DNA from: Caecitellus pseudoparvulus
Lineage: Eukaryota > Protista > Bigyra: Bicosoecida
Direction: 5' to 3'
Length of the DNA stretch: 64,000 nt
NCBI GenBank assembly: GCA_965644315.1
Contig: CBFFRQ010000051.1
Coordinates: 66,341-130,340 of the forward strand
Made by a program: the position numbers and the translations under genes. The notes below the pieces were generated by a model. The model was not told the DNA's origin, made no database searches, and was given only the letters and a program-made list of their open reading frames with translations. Below are positions 6,312 through 64,000 of the stretch, piece by piece (the first letter of the stretch is position 1; each line of letters opens with the position of its first letter).

Positions 6312-7455
6312 ATGGCATCCATTCTCAAGTTCTTCAACGGACAGGCCCAGAGGTATCATGCCTCGGCTAAGCGGTACGCCCACTGCGCGCTTTGGCGCGA
6401 CACGCCTTTGGCGTCTTGCACAGCTTTCCGCACCTTGCTGCCCAGATACAAGACCCCCGACAACAGGGCGGTGGCTGCCGCGACCTCCAAGACGCTGTAT
6501 GTGGGCAACTTGGCCTTTGTCACGACGGAGCAGCAAATCATCGAGGTGTTCCGGCGGTGCGGCCCAGTGAAGCAGGTGATCATGGGCCTCAACCGCGAAA
6601 GCCGCAAGCCTTGTGGCTTCGCCTTCGTCATGTGCGTGCCGGCCAGCCCACGGGCCCCAGGCCAGCCAGCACTGCACGCACCCCCCAACTCCGCTGCACT
6701 TGCCCAGCTACCATCGCCGTGACAGCGTCGTGGCGGCGATGAACTACCTCAACGGCAGCAAGCTGGACAACCGGTACATCCGCCTGCAAATCGACAAGGT
6801 GCGTGACGCAGCCCTCAGAGCCTGAACCGGATACGCACACCAACGACAGTCTTCAGTCTGCCCCCCACTGCCTGTGACTGACTCGGTTGAGTCACGACTC
6901 CCCGAGCCTGTGCAACATGAAACGCAGCCGTTTCAACACCGCTGACAGGCAGCCTCTCACGCCTGCAGTGGCTTTTGACGTCTCACATCCACCACGCTTC
7001 CTGCGCAGGGTTTCCGTGAGGGACGCCAATTCGGCCGCGGTGTCACTGGCGGCCAAGTGCGTGATGAGTTGCGTGTGGACTTTGACGGCGGGCGTGGTGG
7101 CCTCGGCGTCTTGGCAGCGCAGCGCACGGCACTCTCACGCCGCTCAGCGGGACACCGCGCCAGCATGGCTGAGTTCACTGCTCAGTACGCAGAGGGGTCA
7201 GGCGGTGGTGGGCACGTGCGTCGGCGTGGCGGAAACGGTGGCGCGGCGTGGGATGGCCAGAAACGCCGCCGAGGGCGTGGAGGGCACGACCGCCGCCGCA
7301 GAGAGCCCGTTGCTCAGCGGTACAGCGCGCCAGGTGCTGCCGCCCAGCGGCCGCTTGAGGAGCGCCTGCACAGTTCCCTGGGTGCCGCTCCAGCCGGAGG
7401 TGGCGGAGGCCGGCGGCAGCGCAGCCCCCCACCGCACAGGGTGCAAGGGGAGTAG
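6312..7455 (+). CDS. NCBP2: Nuclear cap-binding protein subunit 2 (CBP20); 4 exons
   Basis: [52 protein letters not shown], then [31 protein letters not shown]. Introns at about 6374-6445, 6632-6707 and 6799-7008. Confidence 0.93.
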
Positions 7456-54681: not shown

Positions 54682-56100
54682 TCACCGCCGAAGTCGACTC
54701 CACTTGTCGTCGTCCTCCTCCGCCCCCCCTGCTTCCTGCTTCAGCTCATCCTGCGCCTGCTTTGAACCAAGATCTGCAGCCCTCTCCAGCAGCTCACGAA
54801 CCTTGCCAGCGTTGCGCGCCACACCCAAGCCTCGCTTGTACATGTGGGCCAGCCTGTAGATTGCAGTGGCGTTGCCCTGCTCCACCGATCGCTGGTACCA
54901 CTCTACTGCCTGTTGAAAGTCCTGCTCCACGCCCTGTCCTCGTTCGTACATGCCCCCCAGCATGTGCTGGGCAAATCCGTTCCCAGCCTCAGCCGCCTGC
55001 CGGAACAACCGTACAGCCTCAACATAGTCCTTGTCAACCCCATTGCCTGACAGGTACGCACGCCCCAATTCGGTCACCCCTAGCATGTTTCCAGCATCCG
55101 CTGCTGCTTGAAACAACTCCACCGCCCTGCCAGGGTCGTACATCTCACCTTCACCTTTCATGAGCAGTCTCCCGAGCTTCACCATCCCAGAGACGGTGCC
55201 CTGCTCAGCTGCTCGCTGGTACCACTTCACTGCTTTCCGAAGATCCTTCACAAGCCCACGCCCTTGCTCATATAGTTCCCCCAGCATCTGTTGGGCGAAA
55301 CCGTTCCCAGCCTCAGCCGCCTCCCCGAACTGCCGTGCAGCCTCAGTGTAGTCCTGTTCGACACCCTTGCCTGACAGGTACGCCTGCCCTAAGCTCGTCA
55401 TTCCTCGAAGGTTTCCATCTTTGGCTGCCGCCCGAAACAGCTCAACTGCCCTGGTAGGATCGTACATGGCACCTTGGGCGTGCATGAGCAGTCGCCCCAG
55501 CCTGACCATCGCAGTACTGTTCATCTGGCCAACTGCCCGTTGATGCCACTCTGCTGCTTGCTGCAAGTCCTTCTCCACGCCCTGCCCTTCCTCATACAGG
55601 CCCCCCAGCATATGCTGGGCAAAATCATCTCCAGCCTCAGCCGCCTGCCGGAACAACCGTGCAGCCTCAACATAGTCCTGATCCACACCCCTGCCCATGG
55701 CGTACATCTGCCCCAAACTAGCAATGCCCCTGACGCAGCCTGCAGCAGCCGAAGCTCGGAACAACCTCAGCGCCTCGGCGTCATCACGGGGTACCTGCTC
55801 GCCAGTCTGGTACCGCCTGCCCAGTTTGTACTGGCCGCTGGGGTTGCCTTGCGCCGCCGATGCACGGTACCACCTCAACGCTTCCTCCTGATCCTCATCC
55901 ACACCTTCCCCGTCACTGTACATCTTGCCAACACGCCACTGTGCCTCCGCATCACCCGCCTCGGCGCCTGCCAGGCACTCCTCAAACGACTTGCCCTCCC
56001 ACACCATCCCACCTCCCTCACCACCTGCCACCTCACCAGCTTGCGGTGCTGCCACTGCGTCTTGAGGAACTGCCGTCCCGCCGCCTTCTTCGGCTGCCAT
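54682..56100 (-). CDS. Sel1-like repeat protein, copy D (11 repeats); may start at ATG 56454 in the leader exon
   Basis: Intact ORF with eleven SLR units. Confidence 0.9.
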   Translation of the reverse strand: MAAEEGGGTAVPQDAVAAPQAGEVAGGEGGGMVWEGKSFEECLAGAEAGDAEAQWRVGKMYSDGEGVDEDQEEALRWYRASAAQGNPSGQYKLGRRYQTGEQVPRDDAEALRLFRASAAAGCVRGIASLGQMYAMGRGVDQDYVEAARLFRQAAEAGDDFAQHMLGGLYEEGQGVEKDLQQAAEWHQRAVGQMNSTAMVRLGRLLMHAQGAMYDPTRAVELFRAAAKDGNLRGMTSLGQAYLSGKGVEQDYTEAARQFGEAAEAGNGFAQQMLGELYEQGRGLVKDLRKAVKWYQRAAEQGTVSGMVKLGRLLMKGEGEMYDPGRAVELFQAAADAGNMLGVTELGRAYLSGNGVDKDYVEAVRLFRQAAEAGNGFAQHMLGGMYERGQGVEQDFQQAVEWYQRSVEQGNATAIYRLAHMYKRGLGVARNAGKVRELLERAADLGSKQAQDELKQEAGGAEEDDDKWSRLRR

Positions 56101-56825
56101 CGCAACCTGCGCAACGCACGCACACACGCACATGCGAAACAATGCACAGCACGCCTTTGCTCCCCTTGCCCATGCATTCGCCCCCCTGCCACCACGCTGC
56201 ACGATCACCCATGCACAAGCGCAAGTGCTTGCTCAACCACACCCCTACACCACGCCTACGACGCGCACACCTCCCCTCACGACACACACAGCAATGCACG
56301 CCATCACCCCCACACTACATACACAGCACGCCAGCTGCTGCCACGTCGCCTCGCGCTCACCCCCACTCACCTGGGTACGCTGGGTCTGCTTGGCTGCTGG
56401 CCACTTCGCTCGTGGCGAGTGTGCCAGTGCTGGTGATGCTGGTTGTGTGAACATGATTGAGACTCTGACTATGTTTGTGATTGGATTTGAGACAGTGTGC
56501 ACTGTGTGACGGGGTGTCAGTTGGCGTTTCTCATAAACACAACCACTTGCAACTAGGCCAGGCACCCCCCCCCCGACGAGGCAGACCCCCCCCCCAAGTC
56601 CAAGGACACGCCCACGCGGGAATGCGACGGCAAGACACTTTCAGACTCTTGACGTTGTACTGTGCAGGCCTGCCTTGCACCTTTCGCTGCCTGTCGCTTG
56701 CGTTGTGCCGAGCTTTGTGCTTCGGAACACGCACGCCAGTAGCCGGCTACTTCCGCCGAGCTCACTCCGCGCATCGCACCTCGCGAGCGCTCTGTCGTGG
56801 TTCAGCCCACCTCAGTCCGTCCAAC

Positions 56826-57620
56826 ATGCCTAAGAAGCGCCGGTACGTGGGGTCGAATGTGGCGGGGATGCGGGCTGCGGGCGTCTGCAGGCGAAAGAGT
56901 GTTTGTCCAAAGTCCGCACCAGCAGCAGCTCACCTGTCCCTCCTCCCTCTCGTGCACAGCAACGGCGGCAGGTCCCGCAAGGGCCGTGGCAAGACCACCC
57001 TGGTCGACTGCGGTCACTGCCGATGCAAGCCCCCTAAGGTGCGTGCGGAATGGGCGCCAGGCAGGCCGAGGGTTCGCATCAGTGCAGTGCAGCAGGTGTG
57101 AACAGGCCGGGGGGGCCAGGCCTCCGCTCGTGGCTTGAAATGGCAGGCAGTGTCTTGCATTCCATGCAAGTGTTGTGTTGTTTGCCTTTTCTACCCCGGG
57201 CGGCGGTGGTGGGCTGCTTTGTGGCGGCGTGTGTCTGTGCAGGCCTGCGGCTCTGCGGCTGCCTGCCGTGTGCACCATTCGCGGCATACCCTGGACGTCA
57301 CGCCGCCCGTCTTCGCTCCGTTGCAGGATAAGGCCATCAAGCGCTTCTCCGTGCGCAACCTGGTGGACTCTGGCGCCATGAACGACCTGAAGGCCGCCTG
57401 CGCCATTGACGGTGCGTGTGCAAAAGCCGCAGGGGTTAAGACGTCCCCGCACACGCCGACCCCTCCGCCTGCCGCAGCCTATGAGCCCCCTAAGCTGTAC
57501 AGCAAGAACTACTACTGCGTCTCTTGCGCTGTGCACTCCCGCATCGTGCGCGTGCGTAACGCACAGGCACGCCGCGTGCGCGAGCCCCCTGTCCGCATGC
57601 GCCGCCCCCGCCGGGACTAA
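56826..57620 (+). CDS. RPS26: 40S ribosomal protein eS26; 4 exons
   Basis: MPKKRR|NGGRSRKGRG..CGHC..PK|DKAIKRFSVRNLVD..|PKLYSKNYYCVSCAVHSRIVRVR. Introns at 56843-56959, 57039-57326 and 57412-57477. Confidence 0.95.
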
Positions 57621-57828
57621 GTGGCTAGCTGTGGAGGAAGTGTGCGCTGCCGGCCCGCTCCACATGGGCTTTGCAATGCACAAACAGTACACTCTGTCCA
57701 TGCTTGGCTTCGGTGCATTGCCCGGTTGCGGCAGGCTGAGGGCGGATGTCCCGCTGGCTCAGCCTGGCGCTTGGGGGCCAGCTCCCCGTCCACCACCACT
57801 TGACTCACGCACGTTGCAGAGGGGCAGG

Positions 57829-60800
57829 CTACAACAGCCCGCCCAGGGCGCCAACCACGCCACCCAGGCAGTCCCCAAGTCCGCCACAGACATCCCCCAG
57901 GCTGCCACACGCCGAACAGACGCCGCCGGCACACTCGCCGACGGAGCCCAGGAGGCCCCCCGCCGCGCCCATGCACTCCGGCACGGCGTTGCAGACGGAG
58001 GAGCAGCAGTCCCCCGCACTGCCCACGAGGTCGCCGCACTGCCCGCAGACGCCGTCCACCAGCCCGCCGGCACAGGAGCCACAGGCGCCGACGATTTCGC
58101 AGGAGCCGCACTGTCCCAGGCAGTCCTGGGCACCGCTGGCGATGCTGCCGAGGCAGCCGGGGACACAGCCACAGGCGTCGCCGCAGAACTGCCCCACGTC
58201 CCCGAAGCAGTTGTCCAGGAAGCCAGCCACGGGGCCGCAGTCGCCGCAGCAGCCAAACACCTCAGACAGGTCGGCGCCACAGCAGTTGCAGGCGGCGTCC
58301 CCCATGCCGCCCAGGGCGCCCCCCACTGCTGAGAAGCCGCTGGAGAAGGCGTCGCCGGCGCCGGACGCCATGCTGCCCATGCCAGCGACGAGGCCGCCGG
58401 CGTCGCCTGCGACCAGGCTGCCCACCGCCACGGCACCCGCCACGGCGGCGCCGACAGCCACGACACCCAGCGCCACCTTGGCGCCCGTTGGCAGTCCGCC
58501 CTTGGAGGCTTTGGACTTGGGGTCGGCCATCTTGGCGTTGCGCTTGGCGGGGTCGGCTTCCGCTGCGCGGCGCTCCTGCACTTCCTTCTCGGTGGTGGGG
58601 AAGGCCACCATGGCGGTGTGGGCGCAGGGCACGGAGTTGGCGACGGAGATGGCCACGATCTTCTCGCGCATGGCCATGACCTTGGGGTCCTTCGAGGAGT
58701 CGCCCCCCGCCAGCCAGTGCCCCGACACCAACAGGTCCAGCTGCTGCCGGGCGAACACCTTGGTCACGGGCACGAGGCTGGAGGAGTAGACCGGGATCTG
58801 CCGCTCCCACGCCCGGCCGTCGGGCAGACGCCCCCGGATGCCGATGACCTGCGGGTGCTGGCCGATGTAGCGCCCCGACACAACCACCGGCGCGCCGCAG
58901 TACAGGTCTGGGATGGGCGACGGGTACACCTCCAGGCCGCCGGAGTAGCACTGGGGCGGCATGCCCACTGCGATGTCCAGCAGCACGGGGGCGGAGGCCT
59001 TCTGCATGAGGGAGATGATGTTCTCCTGCAGCGTTTCAGCGCGCAGGGCGTTGTCGAAGTACCCTCGCCCCACCTGGGCGCTCTGCTGCAGGAAGTAGTC
59101 GTTGCACCAGCGGCCAATGCCGAAGGTGAAGAAGCGGTTGGGCGGCAGTTGCTGGGAGACGAGGGTGGCGTTGGAGGACTTGATGTAGCCGACGATGTGG
59201 TGTTCGTTCGGAACAGCGCCGTCGGTGAGCAGGAACACGATGGGCACCTTGGCGCCGGCAGTGGAGGGCGAGGCGGGTGCGGAGGGGTGCACCTGCCCGG
59301 GCGCGCCACGGTGCGGCCCCTCCTCCTGCTCCCCCCCCATGGGCCCACTGAGCGGGTTGCTGGCCGACATGCGCCCATCCTGCGTCACCACCGGCGCGGC
59401 GCCCACACTGCCCCGCAGCAGCGCGTTGGCCTGCATGACAGGCGTCAGGATGTCCGTCATGCCTGCCACCTCCACCGTGCGCACGTAAGCCTGGGCGGCA
59501 GACTTGTTGGCGGGGGTGGCGGGCACCAGGCGCACGCCCATGGCGCAGATGTCCTGCAGCTGGGCGGGCACGGCGGGCGGCGGCATGCCTGCCTCCGCCG
59601 CCTCCCGCTGGGCCGTGGCGGTGGTGGCGCCGTACTGCGCCTGGTCCTCCGACCGCCAGGCAGGCATGCCGGGGCGCCACCAGACGCGGCGCGAGTTGAA
59701 GACACACACGGCAAAGTCGTCGTTGGGCCCCAGTTCGTCCAGGCACCGCACGAGGGCGTCCTTGGCGATGTTGATGGTGGTGCCGGCCATACTACCAGAG
59801 TTGTCCAGCAGGAACACCATGCGCCGGCCGAAGGTGAGGGAGACACTGGACAGCTTGGGCGGGGACATGAACAGGATGAAGGAGCCGCCGTTCTCGCCGC
59901 GGGGCCCCGGCAGGTTCTCCATCAGCGCCGTCGCGGCGATGTCGGACGACCAGGCGTTGTACGAGACGACGAAGTCGCGGTTCTCGAAGGGCTGCCCCGG
60001 AGTCAGCTGCAGCTTGAAACGCTGCATGCCCTGCACGATGGGGCCCTGGCCCTGCACAGCCTGCATGGGGTGTGTGGAGACGCCCCACCGGGACTCTGGC
60101 GTGCCCGTGTTGATGTCTGCGTACAACTGCAGTGCCTCGTGCACCGGGCGCTCGCAGACTCCGCCGGGGAAGGTGAGGGGAACGTGCAGGGAATACTCGC
60201 CCTGCCGGAAGCGCAGGTTCTGGAAGTAGTTCACCTCCACGTTCATGACGGAGTTGCCGGGCGCTGCCGGGAAGGGCAGGCGGAAGATGTCAGGGTTGTA
60301 GTCCAGGCCATCGGGGCGGTATTTGGTCATGGCTCCCTGCATGGCAGGGTTGCCCTTCTGCTCCTGCGCCACCTGCGTGTCCATGACCACGGTGTCGTAC
60401 ACGTTGCCGTCAGACAGGAACACTGTCGCGGAGGACATGGTGCCGTCTGGCGTCATGGGCACCTGCGAGGGCGGGGAAGGCGCGCCGCCGTGCCAGATTG
60501 CTGAGCGCCAGTCAAAGGGGCGCTCCAACGCGCCGGCGCCGGCGCCGCCCTGCGCTCACCTCCAGAATGCAGTCCACGGCGTTGGGCAGGGAATTCACAA
60601 CTTGCGCCGTGATCTTCACGAATGCAACTGTGCAGCGGTGGGGGAGTGGCGCGTCAGTGCAGCGCACAGCTTGGCTTTGCTGGTTGCCGCGGCACGCGCC
60701 GGCAACCCCTGCAAGGCGCACACTCCCAGGCGCAGCCCGGCACAGGAGGAAGAAAGCACCATGCGGATCGGGAATCCCATGGTGAAGGTGCAGACCACCG

Positions 60801-60965
60801 CACAGCGCCGCGGCACGCACCTGCCACATGCACCTGCACGTTGACAGTCATGTTGCGCACAGGAAGCAGCAACGGCACCTCCCCGCTCAACGCCACGACA
60901 CGGGTGATGCTGGGCTTGGCCTCCACATCAAAGGGCACGGGTGGGATGGACCCTCCTGCAGACAT
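57829..60965 (-). CDS. vWA-domain protein (inter-alpha-trypsin inhibitor heavy chain-related) with a C-terminal hydrophobic segment and Cys/Gly-rich tail; 3 exons
   Basis: MIDAS-type motifs FLLDNSGSMAG, GMTDI and FLLTDGAV, plus FTFGIG..CNDYFL and EVYPSPIPDLYCGAPVVVSGRY. Start at ATG 60965 with two 5' introns. Confidence 0.85.
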
Positions 60966-61088
60966 GGCTCCGTAGGCTGCGCTGCCGGCCTGAAGCAGGG
61001 GCGTGGTGCAGTGCACCTGAGCCGGTTCCACTGCGCCTGCCGTCACCTGAGCGCGCTCTGTAAGGAGAGTTTGAAGAGTGTTTTTTTT

Positions 61089-61299
61089 CTAGAGCTCAAT
61101 TTTGCGCTAGTGAAGTGAGTGGGGCGACTGCAATGCTAGTGAGAATGCATGCCCAGAGGCACACTAGTGAGCGGGGGTGGTTGTGCTCGGTACTAGTAAA
61201 TTTCGCTGGGCGAGGCGCTACTAGTACGGAGGGCCGCCCAGCGCACTACTAGCGCACCGCCCAGCTGGACATTTTTCCTAGTAGTACATTCTTCGCTAG
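61089..61299. repeat. Phased array of nine CTAG palindromic cores with unique spacers
   Basis: CTAG starts at 61089, 61107, 61136, 61164, 61193, 61221, 61249, 61278 and 61296. Confidence 0.9.
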
Positions 61300-61414
61300 C
61301 GCAACAAGTTCGGTCTGCCGTGAATCGATTGCATTGAAACACACCTTGACAACCTGAAGAACAATGAAGTAGCTTCAGCACGGATGGCTCGGCGCCAGGT
61401 CGAGGGAGGGCATG

Positions 61415-63456
61415 TCAGGTTATCCTGGACACAATTTTGTGCGTAAGCACGGCCATCTCCGTCTGTACGTGGTGCTTCATGCGTAACGACGTCCACAGCA
61501 TGGCCAACATACAGCACGCACGCACCTTGTCGTCAACGGTCAGGCTGCTCAGGTCCCCACAATCAGTCACCCACTGCTTGTTCTTCACGTTCAAGCAGTC
61601 GACAGCAACGTTGTACGCAGCCTCCATCCATCGTAAGACAATCCTGGCCCCTTTTGCCACATCTTCTGGGCCACTGAGCGCCGCTTCCAAACGCCTGAAG
61701 CTGGGGTCGAAACGGGGGCCGCTACTGGAGTCCTCGGATCCCCGGCGTTTGAAAACAGCCTTGATGGTGGTATGATTGACGATGGCCTCACGGGCAACGT
61801 TGACTTCCTGCAAGCACAGGCGGTGCCTTGATCGATCAGCCCTTTTTTTGCCCCTCTCAGCCTGTGGCACAAAGAGAATGCATGAGAAAGGAGCATTCGG
61901 GCCCAGCATCACCTGTGCGGGTCTAGACTCACACACATACTTACCTTGGGCACCCAACTGTGGCGGTACTCAGGGTCCTCGGAAGACACCTCGAAGAAGG
62001 CTGGGTCGTGGTCAAGCTGAATGCTTGCACCTCCGGTGCACTTCTCATGGACTGGCTCGTACTTCCTCTGCATCTCGTGCCACGGTTCGAACTTTCCTAG
62101 GCATTCCGAACTGCGCAATGCTCAGAAGTCTGCTATGCTGCGCTCCACGGACTCGGAAGGAGTCCTCTGGGCACTCACCTCGTGATTTTGGCGCGGCACT
62201 TGCTCCTGACATTGCTCATGGCGGCCTTCAGCCCGGCGTAACTCGCACTCTTGCTGCTCTTCGCCATGTCCTTCAGCGCGCAAAGCACGCCACCCCGCTC
62301 GGTAAGCTCCTTCTGTATCGAAACCTTCCTCGCTGCTGCTATCACGTTTTCGAGGCATTTGAACTTCCACGGTGCTGAGAACCTAGGGTCGTCTAGAGCC
62401 CGGCTCGTGGCTTGTGCTCCAACCGGCACCCCATCTCCCCCTTCCTCTGTGGCTCCAGCCACCTCTCGGGCAACGTTCTGCTCGGCCTCAACTGCCTCGA
62501 TGGCTGCTCGTAGTGTGTCTACCAGGTTCTCGGGGTCTGCCAAGATGAACGAAGGGTTCTCGAGGATGAGGTCGACCACGATGCGGCGGGCTTCTGCCCT
62601 GAACTTTCGGGGCCATGGGATTGAGTCTGCGCCCCCACGGGCTCTAAGAGTTCACCCAGCTGGTCTCCCCCACGAGCTCCACGTTTCTTGGAGTTCTTTG
62701 CTTCCTGCTTCTGCGTTAGTGGACCAACCATACCCACTACCTGTGAAGTTCTGAATTGCCCCAGGCCAAGTGAGAGTTGGACAAGGGACATGGTGTTTGC
62801 GCTCCAAACGAAAACCTCGTTCAACAACTCGATGAGACGTTTCTCGCTGGGCGTGCCAATAGACTCAAGCAGCTCCTTCGCCGATTCAAGCTTCTCAGCA
62901 AGGTCAAGCGGCCTTGGTGCCTTGATCGGTCTGCAGCTCGCCATTGTATTTGCGGCGAAGGCTTCTGGGGAAGGGGAGCGGGATTGGTCCGGTCCAACGA
63001 AGCTTAGCAGTGGCCGTTAGAACGCTGTGGCTACCGTGACTGCAGAGCAGGTACGTACGAGCCGCAATGGCAGCACTAGAACCGCCCCTAGCTGTGCCGA
63101 ATAGCTCCCTGTCATCAAGGCATGTGAGTGCGTTGGCATCACCTGCACATGATGCTAGGGTGGGGTGGGGAGGCGCTGCACGGGCGTCGATCCTGTGGCG
63201 CGAACCAGTACGTACCATTACCCTCCAGAACGTCAGGCACCCCAACGACGGACCCAGTGCAGTTGCCAGGGTGAGATGCCCAAAGCACAACATCCCGTCG
63301 ACGTTTCCCGGCCATCACAGCTTTGGCAGCCGTGCTGCGGTTGAAGAGGTGTGCAGCCTCGAGGGGTGTGGCGATACTTAACGAAGCCACGACACTTGCC
63401 GTTGTGTCCCCTGCATCCTCGCTGTCAGAGCCCATTTCATCAAAGTGAAGTGACAT
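61415..63456 (-). CDS. Orphan multi-exon protein in island 2; one junction near 62.6-62.7 kb unresolved
   Basis: Successive minus-strand ORFs. The first two introns (GTACGT donors; 63215-63143 and about 63058-62965) restore the frame. Further GTGAGT and GTAAGT donors lie near 62178 and 61944, and the stop is at 61415. Confidence 0.5.
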
Positions 63457-63747
63457 GGTGAATGGTTGGGGTGGGTGTGCAACAAAAAGCGTATCTGAGG
63501 ACTTGGTGGGTCTGAAAGTACATGCAACGGTGGAATGTCGAGACAGACTGGAAATGCACTGGACGAGGTTGCAAGGCGCCTTCAATGCCCACAGCCCAAC
63601 ACACACCAACGACCAACATGAAGATGCTACGGCTGCCTGGCATTGTGTTGCGTTCTCGCCTCGCTGTGCGCGTTGCGTACGTACGGTAGGGGCGCCAACG
63701 CAAGCAACGGAACTCCGCCGGTGCCCTCACGCTACAGAAGACTCAGA

Positions 63748-64000
63748 ATGAGCGCCCGCTGCAAGCTCTGCAACAAGGAGTTCGACGACGAACGAGCTCT
63801 TGGCGGCCATATGGTCCATTGTCGTCGCAGGCGGATGAAGGCGTACAAAGAAGCACAAGTCCAACGGCTTCGTGAGGTTCAGGAGCGGCTGGCTTCAGAA
63901 GCTCGAACTACTCGCCTTGAACGCAAGCGCCACCAGCAAGCCGCGGCGCGGCCTCAACATGATGTGGGTGCCAAGCGCATGGCAGCCGGGCACTCACAAG
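63748..64000 (+). CDS. 3'-partial ORF with an N-terminal C2HC zinc finger
   Basis: MSARCKLCNKEFDDERALGGHMVHCRRRR.. stays open to the window end and is absent from the ORF track. Confidence 0.6.
   Translation, partial: MSARCKLCNKEFDDERALGGHMVHCRRRRMKAYKEAQVQRLREVQERLASEARTTRLERKRHQQAAARPQHDVGAKRMAAGHSQ

Follow-up and report, generated by a model that had tools for sequence, protein, structure and literature searches.

A phased array of CTAG palindromes as the probable left subterminal repeats of a divergent, Plavaka/CACTA-like transposon in Caecitellus pseudoparvulus

The window analyzed here, a stretch of 64,000 nucleotides whose end is also the end of its contig (C51), consists of host DNA up to position 61039 and of a transposon from position 61040 onwards. 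Shortly inside the transposon, nine CTAG cores are found at positions 61089, 61107, 61136, 61164, 61193, 61221, 61249, 61278 and 61296, spanning 211 bp (61089-61299) and separated by gaps of 18, 29, 28, 29, 28, 28, 29 and 18 bp. The first core is directly preceded on its 5' side by a T8 run (61081-61088), and GC content falls from ~0.66 to ~0.56 at the start of the array. The sequence-only reading of this DNA had described nine cores with these gaps, in a window otherwise sparse in CTAG and following a T8 run at a shift in base composition, and each element of that description was confirmed. The host part of the window (1-61039) contains 34 CTAG, or 0.56 per kb, and the Poisson probability of nine CTAG in 211 bp is ~1e-14 at this host rate and ~1e-9 at the rate of the element interior. 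Nine CTAG were reached in none of 5000 dinucleotide-preserving shuffles of 61040-61340 (mean 2.0, maximum 7), and neither six consecutive gaps of 28 or 29 bp nor a mirror-symmetric gap series arose in 200,000 random placements. Furthermore, CTAG is the most depleted 4-bp palindrome of the host DNA (observed/expected 0.17), and ACTAGT, absent from all 61 kb of host DNA, occurs eight times in the two ends of the element.

Several repeats are superimposed on the array. Sites 2-4 read CTAGTG on the plus strand, that is, CACTAG on the minus strand. An outer module composed of a T-run, CTAG, 14 nt and CTAG (61083-61110, plus strand) recurs as an inner copy of the same composition (61272-61299, plus strand), the two forming a direct repeat (D1) with 71% identity; the inner copy is conserved in the sister family described below, and a module similar to 61083-61110 is present at the right end of the element, inverted and at an equal distance from the terminus. 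Sites 6 and 7 lie in a 30-nt inverted repeat (I1, 61205-61265, 80% complementary), which is the core of an imperfect palindrome of ~110 bp extending over sites 5-8.

Searching the host genome (30.6 Mb in 215 contigs) with positions 61040-61330 returned twelve 100% matches and several more at 69-88% identity, and the stretch is therefore multi-copy. At seven left junctions, unrelated flanks all switch to identical sequence at window position 61040, starting with CCGTCAC. Both termini were read on a full copy (L022), giving a transposon of 6847 bp with 7-bp inverted termini, CCGTCAC...GTGACGG. The genome contains approximately eight near-identical copies (seven left junctions and eight right ends, ~100% identity); contig breaks inside the repeat split four of the left and five of the right junctions, and the whole unit is present on two contigs, C69 and C49. 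As judged by its match to these two copies, with both of which it is 100% identical, the window contains the first 2961 bp of the transposon (61040-64000, plus strand), the contig ending inside the element. The left terminal inverted repeat CCGTCAC (61040-61046, plus strand; GTGACGG at the right end) is thus delimited by seven independent junctions, and the array starts 50 bp inside this left end. The terminal 50 bp up to and including the T8 run (61040-61088, plus strand) are strongly conserved between the two families (alignment A1). An Rfam scan of 55000-64000 produced no match.

From left to right, the element is composed of CCGTCAC with the 50-bp block, the left array (element positions 50-260), a gene termed ORF2 on the minus strand, an intergenic region of ~800 bp, a plus-strand open reading frame of 1087 aa, the right array (6493-6826) and GTGACGG. 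ORF2 is an orphan spliced gene oriented divergently from the transposase gene, and its stop codon lies ~120 bp from the left array. Its last exon, which carries the stop codon (61415-61813, minus strand, 5' limit approximate), is an open frame with 59-63% amino acid identity to the sister family. The middle exon (61944-62105, minus strand, limits approximate) was recognized as a tblastx frame conserved in the sister family, with a splice-donor-like sequence at its 3' side. The first large exon (62175-62944, minus strand) starts with an ATG at 62944, and its frame is open for 141 codons and then interrupted where the copy of the window differs from the C49 copy by a single base. The window holds only the start of the transposase gene, namely its first 84 codons (63748-64000, plus strand), in which weak Pfam matches predict a C2H2/C2HC zinc finger at residues 5-25. 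The intact 1087-aa transposase frame was read on the C49 copy, in which both frames are open; it is broken in the C69 copy.

The copies also differ by single-base lengths at short homopolymers (61714, 61843, 62437 and, in ORF2 exon 1, ~62520). These differences break some frames, and several of the positions also vary among the contigs of a public run (X3) that carries the same organism label as the source; they may be either real mutations or homopolymer assembly errors. The C49 copy with both frames intact (L023, C49:147275-155110) is without the last 16 bp of the right end, and the direct repeat on its flanks measures 15-18 bp (GCTCCCGCCAGGGTG, perhaps preceded by GGC) in place of the usual 2 bp, which marks it as the product of an aberrant insertion or repair.

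The right end of the element carries an array of its own, with eleven CTAG in the last 355 bp, nine of which read CACTAG. The right-hand CACTAG motifs are inverted relative to left sites 2-4, so that the two arrays are mirror images with respect to the ends, and the last 380 bp, when reverse-complemented, show a weak alignment to the first 300 bp of the element in which the CTAG sites are in register. A counterpart at the other end of the island, anticipated by the sequence-only reading, is thereby found in the form of a mirror array and an inverted terminal heptamer. The gaps of the right array (18, 43, 29, 18, 44, 40, 17, 42, 30 and 49 bp) are not evenly phased and, since they and those of the sister family range over 17-50 bp at this end, strict phasing cannot be required for function.

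Five complete copies belonging to two families are flanked by a 2-bp target duplication, the dinucleotides being AT (C69) and CG (C102) for the family of the window and TG, CG and TG for three copies of the sister family. Furthermore, each of the split left junctions (AA, TG, GC and AT) pairs with exactly one split right junction showing the same dinucleotide. In the window, the left copy of the duplication is the TG at 61038-61039. We compared public contigs over positions 59500-62500, and in three runs (X5, X7 and X8, comprising marine metagenomes and a second organism label) contigs of 1.7, 8.8 and 11.4 kb pass through position 61039 with the element missing and only one TG where the flanks meet. 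These contigs match the host flank to exactly 61039 and then continue with GCAGGGGTTGAC... for at least 255 bases, a continuation that corresponds to the DNA beside the right end of the element on contig C19, minus one TG. Because three other runs have the site empty with one TG, the element at 61040 is an insertion polymorphism, and its occupied allele has TG on both sides. Both the target-site duplication and the empty-site alleles that had been proposed as signs of transposition were thus recovered.

Since the empty-site contigs run from the C51 flank directly into the C19 flank, C51 and C19 abut through this copy of the element; identical element copies break this assembly, and the two contigs meet inside one of them. 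On C19 (470805-482056), right end and left array lie ~11.2 kb apart, not 6.85 kb, which may mean either that the copy shared by C51 and C19 contains an insertion or duplication or that the path of the contig is chimeric. Over positions 61015-62500, the ratio of summed contig word depth between element and flank is ~15-45 in run X3 and ~1-2 in runs X5 and X7, where the site is empty. This is a hint that the element recently underwent a burst in the sequenced strain, although word depth is not reliable as a copy number.

Discrete shared ends, inverted termini, a target duplication and empty sites are all present, as expected of a cut-and-paste (TIR) DNA transposon, and the element is very young, recently active and probably still mobile. 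The proposal that the CTAG array represents subterminal sites of a DNA transposon is therefore supported by the copies, the mirror array, the termini, the target duplication and the empty sites. The other option put forward from the letters alone, an origin or recombination site of an unclassified, non-transposon island, was rejected; it is not needed, and the transposon reading is supported throughout.

A second family in the same genome (family 2, hereafter the sister family) is ~68% identical to the family of the window at both ends. Its coding copy (C44:140502-152380, L041+L042) measures 11.9 kb and has a transposase with 82% full-length identity; in addition there are five or more non-coding 3.4-kb derivatives, ~95% alike, in which both CTAG arrays are retained. 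Its members are found on C44, C94, C13, C18, C65, C24, C17 and C69, and the last ORF2 exon is still open in two copies. In a comparison with the C44 copy, the bases of the CTAG cores are identical between the families at 34 of 36 positions on the left and 44 of 44 on the right (together 78/80; 94-100%), and the spacer bases at 89 of 147 and 154 of 252, respectively (together 243/399; ~61%). The left array of the sister family has gaps of 28, 29, 30, 28, 27-28 and 18 bp, sites 1 and 2 being missing, such that it retains seven of the nine cores with their spacing; its right array has gaps of 17, 42, 21+8, 18, 44, 40, 17, 43, 30 and 50 bp. Array spacing has thus been held within 1-2 bp between the families at both ends. 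This comparison shows cores and spacing conserved while the spacers drift and, as far as sequence can tell, both under selection.

The sister family also qualifies the symmetry that had been ascribed to the array. The gap series is indeed mirror-symmetric in the copy of the window, but this symmetry is absent from the sister family, which lacks sites 1 and 2. The exact mirror symmetry of the gaps is therefore specific to the family of the window and probably incidental, and it was rejected as a functional feature.

The same data bear on the possibility that the array is a decayed 28-29-bp tandem repeat, a minisatellite carried by the element in which the cores are functionless and simply its best-preserved part. 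Around the cores there are indeed short direct repeats spaced 28 bp apart (D9 and D13), and in the metagenome contig of a distant relative (L052) a genuine tandem repeat with a 29-bp unit lies ~85 bp interior to a CCGTCAC, so that the phased array could have begun as a tandem repeat. However, Tandem Repeats Finder reported no array over this region, and the spacers between the inner sites of the left array resemble one another no more than shuffled spacers do (P 0.17 for direct orientation and 0.08 with both orientations). A plain tandem repeat was rejected on these two results, in agreement with the initial judgment that this is not an ordinary one. Under neutral decay, moreover, cores at 94-100% identity and a spacing constant to 1-2 bp would not be expected beside spacers at ~61%, nor is a mirror array with the same core at the other end in keeping with it, and we consider a functionless minisatellite extremely unlikely.

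Non-autonomous derivatives that keep both arrays have multiplied in both lineages, at 3.4 kb in family 2 and at 2.0 kb in a family designated 1b, and these multiplied copies are without the transposase gene and most of ORF2. One derivative (C18:1078955-1080965, L046) is a 2.0-kb deletion product of the family of the window with 81-88% identity; it has a degenerate left terminus, TCCATAC, and has lost one CTAG (site 9 reads CAAG).

These derivatives also weigh against a role of the sites at the level of RNA or single strands, be it as a 3'-UTR element, a terminator or hairpin, or a bidirectional barrier of stop codons. Such a role would fit the location of both arrays downstream of outward-reading genes, both mRNAs of which would carry CACUAG in sense. 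The array also folds better than shuffled sequence, with z scores of -5.15 (RNA, minus strand) and -3.95 (DNA, plus strand); the imperfect palindrome of sites 5-8 is present in the sister family as well; and every CTAG provides TAG on both strands, with TAG triplets falling in all three frames. Nonetheless, palindromic repeated cores inflate folding energy in any case, covariation is weak (three independent lineages) with paired columns consisting mostly of invariant cores, and ~200 bp of DNA with 58% GC has stops in all frames without any special array. Given that both arrays are kept in multiplied copies from which the transposase gene and most of ORF2 are gone, we regard an RNA-level function as very improbable.

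To place the transposase, a 553-residue frame covering approximately its first half was compared exhaustively with 1.84 billion representative proteins using phmmer, which yielded only four relatives. The closest full-length relative, P0002, is 35% identical over query residues 317-503, also starts with a zinc finger, and matches the Pfam Plavaka family (PF18759) below threshold (E 6.7e-5, 22.7 bits versus a cut-off of 26.3). The transposase of the window's family gave no match to PF18759, and a six-frame search of the genome with PF18759 returned nothing. Transposase_21 (PF02992) was matched neither by the protein nor in the six-frame genome search, and the six-frame search for KDZ gave one weak match on C37, outside the element. 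Across all reading-frame pieces of both genes, Pfam returned only weak zinc-finger matches, and none for the last ORF2 exon, ORF2 having been searched exon by exon with its exons unjoined. A word-index profile search with alignment A3 returned no match and also missed the known relatives, and a profile search against PDB sequences gave a chance match only (E 1.8). AlphaFold models calculated from shallow alignments were too poor for use (pLDDT of 36 for the transposase core and 52 for the last ORF2 exon).

A language-model feature search with residues 340-860, a lead-grade method that agrees with the sub-threshold Plavaka match of P0002, gave a Plavaka cluster as its best hit (0.95, 174 shared features); sets of Plavaka-carrying families made up 16 + 8 of its 30 hits and Transposase_21 four. 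The transposase shows the motifs D391, D526, C541-x2-C544, H777-x3-H781 and E801; in alignment A2, the D, H-x3-H and E residues do not vary and C-x2-C is present in three of the five sequences. The CACTA-Mirage-Chapaev-Transib-Plavaka clade is characterized by a D, D, C-x2-C, H-x3-H, E pattern and by target duplications of 2-5 bp, the Plavaka branches having 2-3 bp (Kojima, PMC12730594). The element has this motif pattern and a duplication within this range. The termini of the clade are 5'-CA..TG-3' "in most cases" (PMC12730594), in contrast with the CCGTCAC..GTGACGG found in both families here. Based on these comparisons, the transposase most likely represents a divergent, remotely Plavaka/CACTA-like lineage. 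The EnSpm/CACTA affinity suggested by the sequence-only reading is thus borne out remotely, in that the transposase groups with, and shares the motif pattern of, the CACTA-related Plavaka; CACTA termini, a 3-bp duplication and a PF02992 domain, which together define EnSpm/CACTA in the strict sense, are absent.

Plavaka itself resembles the element in its 2-bp target duplication and is its nearest neighbour by the sub-threshold Pfam match and the language-model features. It differs in its termini, which are TGT..ACA in PlavakaA and CATCA..TGATG in PlavakaB; the protein of the window, for its part, falls below the PF18759 threshold (no match), and the element has no TET/JBP or PAG accessory gene. 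Plavaka has otherwise been reported from basidiomycetes and red algae (bioRxiv 10.1101/2025.02.11.637652); with a marine protist as host, the element widens the range of the Plavaka/CACTA-like group past fungi and red algae. The CTAG array is accordingly a feature of a known kind in a new and very divergent Plavaka/CACTA-like lineage and does not constitute a new genetic system. For this lineage, which is almost absent from databases, a transposon that is very young and probably mobile to this day is now documented together with its two ends, its target duplication and naturally occurring empty sites.

Very short motifs repeated many times near both ends are a property of other transposons too. 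In Ac/Ds elements of the hAT superfamily, AAACGG hexamers are repeated in the subterminal ~200 bp of both ends, are needed in cis by non-autonomous elements, and are read by a zinc-finger region at the N-terminus of the transposase. The subterminal repeats of Ds are mentioned in PMC3260210. This likeness is one of arrangement without sequence relation, Ac/Ds belonging to another superfamily and having an 8-bp duplication and irregular spacing.

The closer parallel is En/Spm, in which the subterminal repeats determine excision in cis and serve as binding sites of TnpA (PMC2613891). As in the element described here, En/Spm has many short motifs, direct and inverted, within a few hundred bp of both ends (PMC2613891). 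The ends are likewise asymmetric (here nine sites in ~210 bp on the left versus eleven in ~335 bp on the right), there are two genes, a large transposase gene and a smaller spliced one, and non-autonomous deletion derivatives keep the arrays. The differences are that the motif of En/Spm is 12 bp long, against a palindromic core of 4-6 bp here; that the sites of the left array keep a strict phase of 28-29 bp; that CCGTCAC termini and a 2-bp duplication take the place of CACTA termini and a 3-bp one; and that two divergent genes encode the two proteins, whereas the two En/Spm proteins come from one alternatively spliced transcript. No similarity of ORF2 to TnpA or to a Pfam family was detectable.

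Taken together, these data make it highly probable that the array constitutes the left subterminal repeats of a Plavaka/CACTA-like transposon, serving as cis-acting docking sites for an element-encoded protein. The arrays are identified as subterminal repeat regions because of their position, their mirror arrangement, their selective conservation and their retention in non-autonomous derivatives: the motif lies near both ends, is inverted between them, and is conserved above its surroundings in diverged relatives. Protein binding at the CTAG cores, the identity of the binder and its cooperativity are inferred. The ACTAGT-like palindromic cores, often reading CACTAG towards the interior of the element, would be the docking sites of an element-encoded DNA-binding protein, putatively a dimer, as the palindromic core suggests. 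This protein could be the N-terminal zinc-finger region of the transposase or the ORF2 product, in the part that TnpA plays in En/Spm. Many sites occupied at fixed distances might then gather the two ends, with their mirror arrays, into one complex, whereupon the DDE transposase would cut at the CCGTCAC termini and reinsert the element with a 2-bp duplication. Since CTAG is the most depleted 4-bp palindrome of the host, a protein reading this core would find few off-target sites. Against such docking sites stand the length of the core, 4-6 bp being short for a specific site, and termini that are not the usual CA..TG of the clade.

Both candidate binders diverge more between the families than does the catalytic core. 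The transposase is 82% identical overall and ~51% identical over its N-terminal 100 residues, and ORF2 is 48-71% identical; at the level of sequence, this divergence does not point to either the zinc-finger region or ORF2 as the candidate binder.

The conservation of the orphan ORF2 between families and the strong avoidance of CTAG in host DNA would also suit a regulatory use of the sites, in which an element protein binds them as a TnpA-like suppressor or anti-silencing factor, or a host silencing factor reads CTAG clusters. There is precedent in En/Spm, where TnpA, when bound to the subterminal repeats, has the further effects of blocking transcriptional read-through and of regulating the element (PMC2613891). 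Sequence cannot separate regulation from end pairing, and the two roles coexist in En/Spm, but arrays located near the termini at both ends and inverted between them fit end recognition best, and we give hardly any credence to regulation as the primary explanation. The array itself, phased and built on a very small palindromic core, could become a model of how transposases or their helper proteins recognize element ends.

The ends of more distant relatives provide a further comparison. The metagenome contig encoding P0002 (L052) has its only CCGTCAC at position 56, and ~85 bp inside it, at 143-383, a 29-bp tandem repeat of 8.3 copies with 91% matches and a GTGAGGTGG-type motif; given that a specific 7-mer is expected about once per 7.4 kb by chance, only the position of this CCGTCAC relative to the array is suggestive. 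The metagenome contig encoding a second relative, P0003 (L049), carries GACATTCA at ~28-49 and, inverted, TGAATGTC at ~6880-6950. These repeats bracket a unit of ~6.9 kb containing a divergent gene of 453 aa and a transposase of 1131 aa, and they are probably the subterminal repeats of the P0003 element. No similarity was detected between ORF2 and the accessory gene of the P0003 element.

It thus seems general in this group of transposases for the ends to carry subterminal arrays whose motifs change, and a step of ~29 bp may have been inherited within it. One could go further and propose that the conserved feature of the transposon lineage is the geometry of the array and not its motif, because two families share the 28-29 bp step to within 1-2 bp and a 29-bp step recurs, with a different, CGTGAGGTGG-type motif, beside CCGTCAC in a relative from another organism that is only 35% identical. 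We consider this extension rather unlikely. If it held, the binder would be a protein oligomer of fixed pitch, ~2.7 helical turns, that polymerises along the end, and its DNA-reading part and the motif would turn over together with the spacing dictated by the protein scaffold.

The genome also harbors at least five further lineages of the same transposase superfamily, which are 25-30% identical and have open frames of 950-1260 aa (contigs C147, C68, C161, C30, C141, C149, C43, C12, C18, C111, C169 and C50). One of these lineages is 57% identical to the metagenomic protein P0003.
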